Shown here piece by piece: positions 1-6,146 of a stretch of 64,000 nt of DNA. Position 1 is the stretch's first letter. Each line of letters begins with the position of its first letter. Under the pieces are notes generated by a model, which did no database searches, had not been told where the DNA came from, and saw only the letters and a list, made by a program, of their open reading frames with translations. A program made the translations under genes and the position numbers. The DNA comes from Pocillopora damicornis (lineage: Eukaryota), in the NCBI RefSeq assembly GCF_003704095.1, contig NW_020846216.1, positions 1-64,000 on the forward strand, given 5' to 3'.

Positions 1-444
1 ACACATGTACCGTTGGAGAGCGTTTGGTAAGAACTGTTGAAGAAGGATCAAAGCGGCCATTCAAATCTTTGAAAGGCTTCAAACTACAACGTTCATCAAA
101 TTACATACTAAAAGAGTGATTGTGTCTGTCCTTGAGAACCAGAGAAAACGCGACAAATACGAACAAAAAATACTTTTCAAACTACATCGACCCATGGTGA
201 AAGGAAAGAGAAACGGCCTAACTTTAAAGAATTTTCAGTGAAAATCCGCCGATTTCACCACCATATTGAAAATGAAACTACCACAGTGCAACGCAACCGG
301 AGTGCGCACACCGCCTGGGTGCGACTTAAGTCATGTGACACGCACGAGCTGTTGAACTCAGATCTATTTCTGGCAGTAAAAGTGAAACTAAATAGCAAAG
401 GCTCGTAATCAGGAAAAGTCGCGATAGGTTTGGAACTTCGAACC

Positions 445-2112
445 ATGGACAGTGAAGATGTACTTGGCGATGATGGACGTAAAGCTTTGAATGCATGTGT
501 TAAGGTTCGGACCTATTGTGTGGCACAACTTCAGGAATACGAACGGCAGACTGCGCTCGAGCGATTGAGGGGTTGTTATGGAGGTCCCTTTCCACGCGGA
601 TTTGGCTCGTGGCTTCTATTCGACCCACTCAAGATCTATGATGTTCGAAATGGACATAATATTTCGGAGGTAAAAAGATATAGTATCAATGTAATTTACG
701 ATGCACTTCTTAATTTTGACAAGGTGAAGTATGTCGAAAAATACCCTAATAAGGAAGACCCAAGAAGAGAATATTTGATTGCAACTATCGACAAACGAAG
801 AGATAATGTCTCCAGAGAGATCGAGGAGGCCGAGGGTAACCCTGATGGACAACGCAAGTATTCTTGGATTGTAGCGCAGCGAATAGTGAGGGACTGCTTC
901 GCTGGAAACTTTGCCGGTGATGTGGGGCTTCTGAAACAAAAGTTTGGAGAGAGGTACTCCATCATTGACATTTTTAACACCGTCAAAGCGATTGATGACG
1001 AAGGGCAACTCCTCAGATATCCCGAAGATAAAGGGGATGGATCCAAAGAATTAAAGAATGCAATTGAGGCAAACTGGGAAGAACTTACGAAGGAGTACGA
1101 GGATGCTATGGAAAACCCTTGTAGGCAACGTAAATATTCCCGCAGTGGGGCTGAACGTCGAGTAAGAGACTGTTTTGCAGGTACTCTAAAAGAAGATACT
1201 GATATCTTTCCAAATGTACGGAACAGCCGAGAGGCCACTTTCAATGTTTTTGACATAAAGTCTGCTATTGATAATTTTGATGAGAAAAAGCTGATTGACA
1301 AATACCCAAAACCGGGGCGAGGGGAAGACGAAAAGAGGAAAAACGTTGATGATCAAAGGGCTGGCATTCTGACGGAATATGAAAAAACCATCAAATTGGT
1401 AACGATAAGCTATGGAACTGGGTTTCTCATCGGCAATGGTTTGGCTATTACTAATGAACACGTGATCCGAAGATATCTTAATGATGAAGAGAGGTACGGA
1501 CTCTTCGTTTCTAATGAACTCATTCACTGCCTGCCAACTGAAGTTGTTTTTGTTGATGATAAAAATGATTTAGCTTTACTACACTGTCCCAATCTTAATT
1601 TGAATGACACTGAAATTGGCTCATTTAATTTGTGTGGCGTAGACTTACTAGTAGGCCAGTCAGTTTTTTGTTTTGGCTACCCACCTACCCATAGGGGAGA
1701 AACAGCCCTTTTTGTGGAGGGAAAGGTCGCTGGGTACAAGAAAGAACTCCATAAAGAGCCACTGGTGACATTAAATTGCTCACTCAGGTCTGGTTGCTCA
1801 GGTGGTCCAGTTATGCGTAGGATCAAGGGTCAGATAGTGGTTCTTGGTGTTGTCAGAGAACTTCACAAACAAGACATTTTTGAAGAAAATGAAAGAAATT
1901 TCATGGAAAATATGAATAAGCAAGCAACTAATCTTTTGCTCCAAGTGGTTCTGAAATTCATAAAACCATTGATAAAACTTGTATTTAAACTGCACTATGC
2001 CTTGAATTCAACACATTCACCTTTTAACTTTATCAATGTTATACCAGCACGAAAGGTGAAGAAACTACTACAAGACATTGAGGTAAAGATGGCACGTGTC
2101 GCAGCACTGTAA
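445..2112 (+). CDS. Intronless trypsin-like (Trypsin_2/HtrA-type fold) serine protease with three ~92-aa internal repeats; no signal peptide
   Basis: Uninterrupted ORF; first ATG at 445 (ORF track starts at TTG 430). Motifs GTGFLIGNGLAITNEHVI (His codon 1459), KNDLALL (Asp 1567), SGCSGGPV (Ser 1798). Repeat motif QRKYSxxxAxRxVRDCFAG at 850 and 1126, degenerate copy at ~532. Confidence 0.85.
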   Translation: MDSEDVLGDDGRKALNACVKVRTYCVAQLQEYERQTALERLRGCYGGPFPRGFGSWLLFDPLKIYDVRNGHNISEVKRYSINVIYDALLNFDKVKYVEKYPNKEDPRREYLIATIDKRRDNVSREIEEAEGNPDGQRKYSWIVAQRIVRDCFAGNFAGDVGLLKQKFGERYSIIDIFNTVKAIDDEGQLLRYPEDKGDGSKELKNAIEANWEELTKEYEDAMENPCRQRKYSRSGAERRVRDCFAGTLKEDTDIFPNVRNSREATFNVFDIKSAIDNFDEKKLIDKYPKPGRGEDEKRKNVDDQRAGILTEYEKTIKLVTISYGTGFLIGNGLAITNEHVIRRYLNDEERYGLFVSNELIHCLPTEVVFVDDKNDLALLHCPNLNLNDTEIGSFNLCGVDLLVGQSVFCFGYPPTHRGETALFVEGKVAGYKKELHKEPLVTLNCSLRSGCSGGPVMRRIKGQIVVLGVVRELHKQDIFEENERNFMENMNKQATNLLLQVVLKFIKPLIKLVFKLHYALNSTHSPFNFINVIPARKVKKLLQDIEVKMARVAAL

Positions 2113-2222
2113 ACTGGGGTTAATTTGAATTAATTCTCTCCTTTGTTGAACAAAGCAGTACTTCATAAAGTGATACAAGTGTTAGTAACTTGTGACATGT
2201 TGTTACTGTGTAACATGAAAAT

Positions 2223-2398
2223 AGGTGCCCTCTTTTGGTGGGGTTTTACCACGTTAGTTTTGTGCTGTTTGTAAGTACTGTAAGTAGGTGTCCTCTTTTG
2301 GTGGGGTTGTATTAACTTAGTTTTGTACTGTTTGTAAGTACTGTAAATGTAAAGTGCCCTCTTTTGGTGGTGTTTTATTAAGTTATTTTTGTACTGTT
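2223..2398. repeat. Tandem repeat, ~63-65 bp unit, about 2.7 copies
   Basis: Units begin a(g/a)gtg(c/t)cctcttttggtgg at 2223, 2286 and 2351; the whole unit is conserved. Confidence 0.85.
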
Positions 2399-2901
2399 GG
2401 AGGGAAAAACAGTAGTAATCACAGTAATATTCACAACGCGTTTACGAGAGTTTTTTTTTTCCTGACAGCATTATGATTCAGCTGAACAGAAGTCTTTGTG
2501 ATTTTAAATTACCAAATGGTACCTTTGAAAAAAATTGAGCTGAGATGTCTAGAAGATGTACTTTTTTCTGTAATGAGCATGGGTAACGTCTCCTACAAGA
2601 TCCAACCTCAGATTTGAGGTTTGCTTGCTTGTGGAGAGCTTTTTTTTTCCTTTGTCCACAGCCTTGAGGAAACAAATACATGTAACACCACTGTTTATTC
2701 CACAACCAAGGCCAAAATTGTCATCTTTCTTATTCTATTTACTTAAATAAATTTACTGCTACACTTAAAAGTGTCTTAAGCACAGGGTAAATCAAAGGGT
2801 GCTGATTTCTATAGTAGTGACTCAAGCACAGGTTTTTGAAAATATTGTACTCAGTTTCAACAATAATAAAATTACCACATAACTTTTCTATATGCAAAAT
2901 A

Positions 2902-3095
2902 GGAGGTGGTGTGACCGAGTGGATAGGGTGTTAGACTTGTAATCTGGTGGTACCAGGTTCAAGTCCTCCATCCTGCCATTCACTGGAATTGTTCACAGTC
3001 ACCCCAAGTCTAACTCCTCGGCTGCACTGTGTAAATAGCCAACTGGTCTGCCTCCTGCCATTTGGGATTTTCAAGCACTTTATATTTATTTCAGT
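2902..3095 (+). mobile_element. tRNA-derived SINE with Nin-like central domain
   Basis: tRNA-like head with A-box-like tgaccgagtgg and B-box-like ggttcaagtcc, then ctcctcggctgcactgtgtaaatagccaactggtctgcctcctgcca..tgggatt, which resembles the Nin domain of cnidarian SINEs (recognised from memory). Confidence 0.7.
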
Positions 3096-3461
3096 CATTG
3101 TAAAGTGCTATTGGATAGTGATGGAAATAGTACAATATAAATAAAGAATTATTATTAAGTATTTTAAAAATCTGTTTCTGTGTTTATGTGAAAGTGAAGT
3201 TCACCAGGGTTGAATTCTTCAGTGTATAGCTTGATAGAATTACACCCACATCCCCTTGCCACCTGTGTAGTGAACTTGATATCCTTCTACTACACTCACC
3301 ATTTGCAACAACTTAAACAAAATTACTTCTGATCTTTTAAGGTATTAATATCTATTACATTCCAGTGCATAAAATTAGTAGGGATAACATTTCTAAGGGA
3401 TCAAGTTTGCCAGTAGAATCTGTTCCCAGTCCCATAAAATGACTTTTATTGCTTACAGTAC

Positions 3462-6146
3462 CTGTCAGCTCCAAATTCTTTAATTCGTTCTTCATCAACT
3501 CTGGAAGAGATGAACAAGTTACACAGTATTATTTCTAGATGGTTGAAGCTTTTTCCTTAGCAACTCAGTTTTAAGTTTTAAAGCTTCAAGAGTACAATAA
3601 GAAAATTGAGACATATCAAACTCATTTAAATCTTAACCTGAAATATTTTTGAAAAAGAAAAGAGGGAAAGAGGGTCCGCAATAGGGTTCTTCAATCTGGT
3701 AATTCTGACTAGAATTTTCTATCAATCCCATAATCCTTATGGTTTATACTGGCCAATTCTGATCCTGATCATGGATTTTTTCTCAGTCCATTGCCTCGAC
3801 TTAAGAGAGCCTTTTCAGTGGGTAGTGATTTTCTCAACCAGCATTGATCCATTGTTGTCTTTGCTCACCATAAGGCATAAGTTTATCACTTTTCACCAAA
3901 ATGATGATATTGTTAATTTTAAAAGCTGGAAAAGTTTGCACAATTACATGCACTAGTCATGGTAACCACTTCCTTCCATTTAACTTTGATCACTTATTAG
4001 TAAAGAGAGCTCAGTATCAAAGAACTAAATAACGATTTCAACAAGTGCATAAAACAACAAAAGGTGACAGCAATCCCATTGTTCCATAATGAGGGAAATA
4101 AAGGAAAACTATCTGAACACAATTCTGCTGTTGAAGCGAACACTTCTTCTGAAGCAGAACACTCTTCTGAGGAGAAAAACAGCAAGACTGAATTTCTCTC
4201 TGAGCAAGGTATGGCAGGAGAGTTCCAGATCTTGCCATCTTTGTTTCCTGTCTGACAGAGTGCTGATGCACTACTGCAACAAATCTTTGCACTCAGTCCC
4301 CCCCTTTCTGTACACTCTGTGGTGCCATTGGTACGGGTGGTAATCGTTGAATTATCAGTATGGCCAACAGGATCATGGCATGTCCAGGTCAGGATACCAA
4401 GAATTTGAATTCGTAAAATAATATGCCACCCAATGGGTTGTCTCTTTAAGCCTTGTTTGGCTGCATTTCCAAGGTTTCTTGCATAATCTAACATAATGCA
4501 AAGTGTATCTCTGTGATACACAATTAAGTGAGTAATCTCCATGTCTAGTGTAATCGTGCTTGTGGGGAGTAGTGAAATGCAATCCCCTAAAAATGATTGT
4601 GTGGGCTAGGCTTTTTTAGACTTTCATGGAATTTGCCCTTCTTGGTTTGTTTCAGTGATTATTTCCTGAATCCTGCCCCTCAAATCACCAATTCCCATGT
4701 CCTGTTCATGATAACAATTCCGCATTTAGCTCCCTTCTCATTCTAAAAAACCCAGAATTTAAATAAGCTCAATCCCAGATCCTGAAAAACCTATTGGGGA
4801 CCCTCCACATAAGCACATAATTAAAGGGTCACTTTCTTGGGACTGCAACATGTCAACATATCTGTATAATTTCATAAAAGAGGTTGTGGTTATTCATCAT
4901 GGTGAATAACAATAAAAGCTAAGTTTTTTCATTTGTCTCGTGATGTGGTCACATGTGATATAGATTGCAAAATTTTGACTGCATACTGCTAGTCTTCTTC
5001 AGGTGATGAGGTCGTGATCTTATAAAGTATGAATAACTCAGTGATTTGCTCCCTCAGTGGTCAGCGGACCACCAAGGTAGCAAATCACTGAGTGAAACCA
5101 CAAGGATTGAATTGCACCATTCAGAGCTGTTGAAAAACAACTAATCACAGCTGAGCATCATGCTTTATAAGATCACACATGACCAGTCGACCTCATCACC
5201 TGAAGAAGACTAGCAATATGTAGTCGAAACATCGCAATCTATATCACACGTGACTACATCATGAGACAAATGGTAAAACTTAGCTTTTATTTTCATACCT
5301 GTATAAGCTGACAAGTAATTAGTTATTTTAGCCCATAATATTTACCTGTTGAAGACAAAGTTAAGCCATGTGTAGAATGACCTTTTGCCAATGCTTTCAG
5401 TTATTCCTTTGACAGCTACATTTCTCCAAGTTCTAAGTAACGTAGGATGCTTAAGAAACAATCAGTTTAAGGTTAGAAACTGTTGTCTTGGGTACATAAA
5501 GTTCTTCAGTACTTTTCACCAGTACTTTTTTCATAGAATATGCTATTTTAAGCATTAATAGTCCTAACTCATGATTTTGATTGTCCAAATTTTTGCATGA
5601 AGATGAAAGAATACAGCATCAGTATCATCCATGGTAGTGTCTCATACTGAAACTAGGGAGAGATTGTGTTGTGTGTAAAGGAAAAATGACAACTGTAAAG
5701 GGTAAATAAATATATGTGATTAAATCCTCAACTTACACATCAGTAATCTCCTAGTTAGATAAAGGATGAATGAAAAAAAATTATGTAGACAAATAAACTG
5801 CTGCATGATCATTGAATCCAACTGCCAATATTTTTTCCACTGCATGAGTATTTGAGGATCAAAGTATAGCAAGTCCCTTTCATGTACAAGTCTTGAGCCT
5901 TCTGATCCTCATATCTTTGTGTACTGTCACCCCAATAAAAGATCATATATTTTGATAGGTAAAATAAAATTATGCATGTTCCTTCCAGCTCTTTAGAGCT
6001 TGCAATTTGGCTAGTATAGCATGGTGTTATGTTACAGCTGTATGTGGGGTCACAAATATAGTTAACGTTTTCAAATGATATTCCTGAGGTAGCTATGAGA
6101 AAAATAAGCGCTAACTCGAAGAACCATAACTATTACCTACATTCAT
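3462..6146 (-). CDS. DMAC2L: ATP synthase subunit s / factor B (DMAC2L/ATP5S family), 5' portion only
   Basis: Exons 6146-6141 (MN), 5449-5346 and 3500-3462 with GT-AG junctions give MNHPTLLRTWRNVAVKGITESIGKRSFYTWLNFVFNRVDEERIKEFGADR. This matches the family motif FWGWLNAVFNKVDxDRIxxxGPDR after a transit-peptide-like N-terminus. The next family exon (AAxEW..CG) was not found in the window. Confidence 0.7.
3670..4805. mobile_element. Putative non-autonomous DNA transposon (~1.1 kb) with GAG...CTC termini
   Basis: Left end gagggtccgcaatagggtt (3670); right end aacctattggggaccctc (4788-4805), an imperfect inverted repeat. Subterminal aatccc-type motifs. No clear TSD. Confidence 0.55.
4911..5291. 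repeat. Long foldback (inverted repeat) element with Penelope-type hammerhead relic
   Basis: Arms ~4911-5030 and ~5161-5291 are reverse complements. Inner hairpin actcagtgatttgct/agcaaatcactgagt at 5036-5093. CTGAAGA-A-GACTA..TAGTC-GAAAC at 5200-5230. Confidence 0.8.

Follow-up and report, generated by a model that had tools for sequence, protein, structure and literature searches.

Background

PDZ domains are the usual regulators of HtrA proteases, and the LA loop of these enzymes leaves the barrel on its active-site face. This loop makes inhibitory contacts near the active centre in resting DegP (PMC4339722). Among the intracellular Trypsin_2 proteases, FAM111A/B and TYSND1/Deg15 possess extra regulatory regions (PMC9798293). 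Here we describe a gene of the coral Pocillopora damicornis, located at positions 445-2112 of the forward strand of contig NW_020846216.1 (assembly GCF_003704095.1, positions 1 to 64,000; this whole stretch of 64,000 nucleotides is called the window below), whose 555-amino-acid product has a known and a new part. The known part is an HtrA-like Trypsin_2 protease, and the new part is an array of a novel repeat inserted at the LA site, a placement supported by a predicted structure and by comparison with relatives.

Position of the repeats in the protease fold

The features of the gene are as follows (window positions, strand and, in brackets, the evidence).

342-3060, + strand: unspliced polyadenylated mRNA (RNA contigs without joints; ~1.9-kb contigs of a deletion orthologue)
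445-2112, + strand: coding sequence, 555 amino acids and stop (open reading frame, ORF; starts of homologues)
445-519, + strand: amino acids 1-25, with a predicted N-terminal helix (8-17) and strand beta1 (18-25, CVKVRTYC) (model with a predicted local distance difference test score, pLDDT, of 85-88; conservation 0.75)
520-837, + strand: repeat A, amino acids 26-131, the unit that diverges most; amino acids 51-75 form an additional loop modelled with low confidence (repeat alignment, hidden Markov model (HMM), structure model)
838-1116, + strand: repeat B, amino acids 132-224 (HMM; single-unit model with pLDDT 85.8 and three helices)
1117-1398, + strand: repeat C, amino acids 225-318, whose last long helix (294-319) runs straight into beta2 in the model (HMM, structure model)
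1399-1857, + strand: protease core, amino acids 319-471, with His339, Asp375 and Ser452 (Pfam Trypsin_2, codons, structure model, HtrA superposition)
1858-2028, + strand: predicted helical hairpin insert, amino acids 472-528, occupying the L2-loop site that separates the last two strands (structure model, pLDDT 55-71)
2029-2109, + strand: last barrel strand, amino acids 529-534 (FINVIP, after a conserved HSPFNF), and C-terminal helix 535-554, with no PDZ domain after it (Pfam, structure model)
2222-2398, + strand: 63-nt x 2.7 tandem repeat in the 3' untranslated region (UTR) (tandem-repeat detection)

The protease domain was recognised by Pfam as Trypsin_2 (PF13365) over amino acids 324-465 (E 1.6e-16; 61.7 bits against a cut-off of 27.6; profile positions 1-142 of 144). 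Catalytic residues follow the order His, Asp, Ser and are accompanied by the GxSGG oxyanion motif, and the triad that a previous reading of the window made from the letters alone (the sequence-only reading) had called intact is confirmed by the codons of His339 (cac, 1459-1461), Asp375 (gat, 1567-1569) and Ser452 (tca, 1798-1800, in GCSGGP). These residues are kept in family alignments, the catalytic Ser being present in 228 of the 231 family members; the nucleophile position is occupied by Cys in P0093 and P0153 and by Trp in P0077. A paralogue in the same genome (L004; G000:C3577, ORF 907-2316) has kept the N-terminal strand motif, has a degenerate insert and is probably a pseudoprotease, since its catalytic Ser is replaced by Tyr (GNYGSP). 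Sequence matches in the PDB were marginal (best Deg5, E 0.011, and M. tuberculosis HtrA, E 0.02). No PDZ domain was matched in Pfam at E <= 1, and just 21 residues follow the last barrel strand. As had been noted from the letters, there is no signal peptide: the N-terminal 25 residues are acidic and lack a hydrophobic core (h-region), from which the protease is probably intracellular. The highest Kyte-Doolittle value over 19 residues (1.56, amino acids 496-514) falls on a segment with four lysines and one proline that is not conserved in homologues.

An AlphaFold2 model was built on 67 family sequences (mean pLDDT 81.9; predicted template modelling score, pTM, 0.70). It predicts the N-terminal helix (8-17) and strand (18-25) listed above, followed by an all-helical region at amino acids 34-319 (pLDDT mostly 86-95), the last helix of which (294-319) leads directly into a strand at 320-330; barrel strands then continue to residue 471, followed by a hairpin at 481-522 (pLDDT 55-71), a strand at 529-534 and a helix at 535-554. 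Two six-stranded beta-barrels are present in this predicted model, and VIA-align superposed it on the solved protease domains of DegQ, DegP, DegS, HtrA1 and Deg at Z 22-24, with a root-mean-square deviation of 2.2-3.4 Å and 185-199 residues aligned. In each of the 50 matches listed, the aligned range of the model starts at residues 1-12 and ends at 546-552, and the aligned chains begin where the HtrA protease domain starts (HtrA1 166-370, DegS 42-251). For HtrA1 (3nzi_A), 196 of 211 residues were aligned; amino acids 320-471 and 529-549 supply only 173, so the N-terminal helix and strand must be in the alignment.

Comparison among relatives points to the same arrangement. Conservation in the family is highest in the N-terminal block (majority-residue fraction of 0.75 vs. 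0.68 in the protease core), and its strand motif 'ACVKV' is invariant in every subfamily, whatever fills the gap behind it: the repeat-bearing subfamily has GRKALxACVKV, another subfamily, in which a single repeat precedes an acidic low-complexity linker, retains the motif, and the Porites-type subfamily, which has no repeat and an unrelated insert of ~165 amino acids, keeps NACVKVTINR. In 217 proteins of the family, the gap between the end of ACVKV and GSGF ranges from 29 (P0309), 46 and 59 up to 600 amino acids (P0112), with medians of 168, 188, 302, 390 and 501 amino acids for 0, 1, 3, 4 and 5 detected repeats, respectively. The shortest forms resemble ordinary HtrAs, the coral's own canonical HtrA having the equivalent EKAAPAVVYIE 18 residues before its GSGF.

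In addition, the orthologous locus of a related coral (L020, a Tara metagenome DNA scaffold in ENA; 90-97% identity over the 5' UTR, the 3' UTR and the downstream region) lacks window positions 561-1375, i.e. nearly the whole array, by an in-frame deletion with a net loss of 795 nt. It keeps an open 289-amino-acid ORF (P0122), in which the N-terminal strand region is joined to the end of repeat C. This ORF was also found on three ~1.9-kb contigs from other runs, which extend from 87-105 nt upstream of the ATG to ~955 nt past the stop, flank lengths that match the transcript of the 445-2112 gene. Such an intact deletion orthologue suggests that the protease core works without the array.

Several results nevertheless weigh against placing the repeats inside the barrel. 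Pfam and PDB sequence matches start only at amino acids 319-324, and the insert was not bridged in a global MAFFT alignment of coral with bacterial proteins, which left the N-terminal motif unaligned to the bacterial beta1. An HMM of the N-terminal motif places the right site in the bacterial relative P0125, but it does so barely above chance (20 of 1000 shuffles score as well), and it gave no match in the two other bacterial relatives, P0126 and P0127. Furthermore, how the strands pair and where the array lies with respect to the active site were deduced from the ranges and counts of the model alignments. The sequence matches, the MAFFT alignment and the N-terminal HMM would suit a plainer architecture, with the repeats as an N-terminal domain, amino acids 316-322 (IKLVTIS) as the first strand, and the N-terminal motif as a degron or a localisation or oligomerisation signal. 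The model, however, makes amino acids 320-330 a single strand, beta2, and the HtrA superpositions need the N-terminal residues; the motif stays N-terminal whatever fills the gap, and the short forms have it 29-59 amino acids before GSGF, much as canonical HtrAs do. Together, the model, the invariant motif, the range of distances and the L020 deletion make the plainer architecture highly improbable. A complex prediction of the N-terminal 33 residues with amino acids 316-555 scored 0.75 vs. 0.71 for one control and was used neither for nor against the topology. The combined evidence thus supports a split barrel, in which amino acids 8-25 would replace the first helix and strand of HtrA domains and the repeats would fill the beta1-beta2 (LA) loop site; both the assignment of ALNACVKVRT to the first barrel strand and that of the repeats to the LA-equivalent loop, made in the sequence-only reading, have therefore held up in the model, in the variable ACVKV-GSGF distance and at L020.

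The same reading had described a second, amphipathic helical insert between the last two strands. This insert is present (amino acids 472-528) and is not a novelty of this gene: the bacterial S1-C relatives have a helical insert of ~55 amino acids in the same place and of similar length. Given this likeness, the hairpin at L2 would be ancestral rather than coral-specific, inherited from a bacterial-type ancestor, and the LA expansion alone would be a coral invention.

The repeat and its proposed role

The three tandem repeats (amino acids 26-131, 132-224 and 225-318) reported at first sight were corroborated by Smith-Waterman alignments against 300 shuffles (z = 17.7 for B-C, 11.4 for A-C and 4.1 for A-B) and by a repeat HMM, which each of the units matches at E 1e-41 to 1e-46. 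From an alignment of 19 units of five genes, the consensus reads YS...A..RVRDC(F/Y)AG, a loop, TY.IFDI..AL..FD, KYP...GPG and a long helix ending in EYE.A; one Cys and one Ala are invariant across these units, and a Tyr and an Asp are nearly so. A single unit was modelled with a pLDDT of 85.8 and a pTM of 0.76, with predicted helices at 9-18, 41-54 and 66-91.

No Pfam family was matched by the repeat (best E 0.007, for one unit only, to Thymosin), and the repeat profile found nothing among PDB sequences below E 0.23. Searched with HMMER against 1.84 billion protein cluster representatives, the profile retrieved 83 proteins at E <= 0.001, and Trypsin_2 was present in all 10 of those that were scanned, including the ones with a single repeat. 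Among 48,161 PDB representatives, no fold match to the single-unit model reached Z 5 (best Z 4.0), Foldseek gave best E-values of 2.7 (PDB) and 0.9 (viral models), and the ESM Atlas contained no usable feature match for the repeat region, with structure rows at template modelling scores (TM) <= 0.26. A three-helix unit is small, and the absence of a fold match is only weak evidence for a new fold. Our literature search found no paper on this family, its accessions or large LA insertions. The ~95-amino-acid three-helix repeat is undescribed, as had been supposed, and within the reach of these searches it is confined to this protease family.

We consider it fairly probable that the protein is a split-barrel, HtrA-like coral protease, in which the array acts as a lid or docking platform that replaces PDZ control. 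The chain would start with the first barrel helix and strand, exit at the LA site for ~295 residues and re-enter at GTGF. Rigidly attached through the continuous helix into strand beta2, the array would control substrate access to the catalytic site and its timing, with the repeat number setting or tuning the reach of the array, and the L2 hairpin, which lies beside the specificity pocket, may take part. From the inhibitory LA loop of HtrA proteases and the lack of PDZ domains in the coral proteins, we infer that the array takes over the regulatory role. Two points count against such a role: the intact deletion orthologue means that the ORF can be kept without the array, whose function may thus be accessory, and in 34 close orthologues variable sites are no denser in the repeats than in the core, which speaks against an arms-race sensor.

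Both points are compatible with a passive scaffold, i.e. an array that serves, instead of the PDZ domains, to build or space an oligomeric cage, or that is the product of expansion in a permissive loop, with neither sensing nor gating. The content and length of the insert also vary freely, from acidic low-complexity linkers to unrelated helical inserts. However, the units are conserved in their Cys, Ala, Tyr and Asp and are modelled with a pLDDT of 86-95, and the repeat number changes in whole units, which together point to a fold under selection rather than a neutral loop. On balance we regard a passive array as rather unlikely, though deserving of serious consideration, and prefer the lid or docking platform.

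Gene, transcript and locus

The ORF is intact from the ATG at 445 to the stop codon at 2110-2112. An in-frame TTG lies upstream at 430. The transcript has no ATG before the one at 445, whose -3 and +4 positions are A and G, and the homologues begin at the same MD/ME..D.LGD residues. The stretch was contained in 11 polyA RNA libraries, of which 4 (from 3 studies) were aligned to window positions 1-5500. Two RNA contigs of 2691 nt (366-3056) and 2676 nt (403-3056; the 5' end of this one bears adapter letters) are colinear with the genome and jointless, as expected for the ORF without introns that the sequence-only reading had remarked upon, and with a further contig covering 342-1893, the span 342-3056 is free of joints; beyond it the depth collapses. 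The contigs are strandless and cannot give an expression level, the strand of the transcript being taken from the ORF. The protease gene is thus transcribed as an unspliced polyadenylated mRNA of ~2.7 kb, with a 5' end at ~342-403, judged by the ends of the RNA contigs, and a 3' end at about 3056-3165, with an AATAAA near 3140. In all 4 RNA runs the contigs break exactly at 3056, and a lower-depth contig overlaps 3031-3490; a dispersed repeat may be the cause of this break. The tandem repeat in the 3' UTR (63 nt x 2.7 copies, 85% matches) is kept at the orthologous locus L020.

A spliced joint from 3500 to 5346 with CT..AC ends was found in all 4 RNA runs and belongs to an adjoining gene on the minus strand (GT..AG intron); its occurrence in the same libraries means that they report RNA and not contaminating DNA. 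The known exon parts of this neighbour are 3461-3500 (40 nt) and 5346-5449. The 40-nt exon continues leftwards, and its 30-nt loose end matched nowhere in the window or the assembly. This exon runs off the assembly to the left, and window position 1 is the first of the contig; an intron of the neighbour therefore probably encloses the protease gene, in antisense orientation.

An intronless gene near the start of a contig may raise the suspicion of a contaminant, an untranscribed ORF or a decaying retrocopy. Such an artefact is contradicted by the transcripts found in 3 studies, by the spliced animal gene on the same contig, by orthologues and paralogues on megabase coral scaffolds, by the triad conserved in 228/231 members, and by a bacterial genome collection that holds only matches of 21-30 amino acids, and is practically untenable.

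Family distribution and origin

In repeat-bearing members the array consists of one to six copies, and counted across coral members, as had been proposed beforehand, the number of repeats goes from 0 to 5-6 in whole units; other helical inserts and acidic linkers also fill the LA site. All named matches are scleractinian (Oculina patagonica, Pocillopora verrucosa, Montipora foliosa, M. capricornis, Porites evermanni and Desmophyllum pertusum), a statement that holds among named entries, which are only ~1/4 of those in the database. These species presumably span both the complex and the robust coral clades. The gene is single-exon at all loci examined, i.e. the 445-2112 gene, two paralogues in the same genome, a tandem pair and the Oculina gene. 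Several family members lie on single contigs; the tandem pair (L005, 255-2762 and 6001-8745) encodes proteins of 835 and 914 amino acids with five or six repeats each, 3 kb apart on a 414-kb coral contig. No conserved neighbour genes were seen at the tandem pair and the Oculina gene.

The nearest relatives outside corals are three metagenomic bacterial S1-C proteases (P0125-P0127, 31-34% identity). An hhalign comparison of the family with bacterial S1-C proteases gave a probability of 99.3% (E 3e-20, 33% identity over 165 columns), and the family protease HMM scored P0125-P0127 at 50-71 bits, compared with 22.6 for the coral TYSND1-like gene (L008), 14.9 for the HtrA exon and less for other Trypsin_2 genes; the nearest relatives are therefore bacterial and closer than the host's own paralogues. 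Two long frames of the same genome, L011 (G000:C2862, 310 amino acids) and L014 (G000:C1759, 360 amino acids), are Trypsin_2-type, reach <= 19 bits with the family HMM and are unrelated. Atlas neighbours of the protease part were all bacterial or phage clusters, and when the protease part alone was used for a word search, the matches were limited to coral fragments and three weak bacterial ones. No close bacterial donor was found in a bacterial and archaeal collection of one genome per species, which yielded only matches of 21-30 amino acids, and with an identity of only 31-34%, P0125-P0127 would not be donors in any recent sense. Taken together, these sequence comparisons suggest an origin by transfer from bacteria.

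The lack of introns had been taken as a sign of either retroposition or a horizontal origin. The first of these has no support: neither an A-tract after the 3' end nor flanking direct repeats (target-site duplications) were found at the locus, a parent gene with introns is lacking, and all family loci examined are single open frames. The second is in line with the bacterial affinity of the nearest relatives.

A family that is lineage-restricted and multi-copy, with tandem pairs and several members on single contigs, a variable number of repeats, a nucleophile replaced by Tyr, Cys or Trp in some members and an apparently intracellular protein, invites the idea of a sensor-effector, in which an immune or cell-death protease is released once the array detects a signal from microbes, viruses, symbionts or damage. 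Tandem copies, variable units and replaced nucleophiles fit a lineage-specific effector family without establishing one. On the other side, no death-fold, TIR, NACHT or other immune domains were found in the Pfam scan of the protein and the scanned relatives, no conserved neighbours were seen, transcripts occur in ordinary polyA libraries of 3 studies, and the repeats are not hypervariable. We find this idea decidedly doubtful. The broader proposal, in which the array senses a ligand or stress and gates an intracellular protease allosterically, in immunity, symbiont control or cell death, is also unlikely, if slightly less so. If it were true, the protein would be a 'sensor inside the catalytic fold', a stony-coral invention on a bacterial-type chassis, with specificity set by repeat number and insert type.

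The family is of interest beyond these proposals. To our knowledge, domain-sized insertions in the first barrel of a chymotrypsin-fold protease are rare, and the LA insertion site of this family appears to be an evolvable cassette of 29 to 600 residues, filled by a repeat without known relative. Forms with no array, with one to six repeats, with an in-frame deletion or with a replaced nucleophile provide a natural series for studying PDZ-free control of HtrA-type proteases. The family also adds an unannotated, expressed, Scleractinia-restricted group, whose nearest outside relatives are bacterial, to the few candidate lineage-specific coral effectors.

Comparison with known systems

FAM111 and TYSND1 are the described intracellular proteases with which the coral protein might be compared. 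The former, set apart here by description only, has its UBL/PIP regulatory regions N-terminal to a contiguous protease domain, unlike the insertion in the coral protease, and TYSND1 is represented in the coral genome by the separate TYSND1-like gene L008.

The bacterial relatives P0125-P0127, which bear the JGI name 'S1-C subfamily serine protease', share the helical insert before the last strand with the coral protease. Unlike it, they possess a signal peptide or membrane anchor and have a short beta1-beta2 turn and no repeats; in P0125 the beta1 strand (GRKVIKSVFLIVC) lies ~7 residues before GTGF with no insert, whereas the coral protease has ~295 residues in this place.

The closest characterised group is HtrA/Deg (MEROPS S1C: DegP, DegQ, DegS, human HtrA1, plant Deg1/2/5). 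The double beta-barrel is shared, including, by the model, the N-terminal helix, beta1, the last strand and the C-terminal helix, and so are the His-Asp-Ser triad, GxSGGP and the sites of the LA and L2 loops. In contrast to HtrA/Deg, the coral protease is without a PDZ domain and without a signal or transit peptide, has a 57-amino-acid helical hairpin at L2 and is encoded by an intronless gene, whereas the coral's canonical HtrA matches exon by exon. The LA site holds ~295 folded residues in the coral protease vs. roughly 10-50 in HtrA/Deg. The long LA of E. coli DegP is the nearest parallel, as an enlarged regulatory element at the same site as the coral array; in DegP it is a loop of a few dozen residues, and in the coral protease an array of folded repeats that varies in number.

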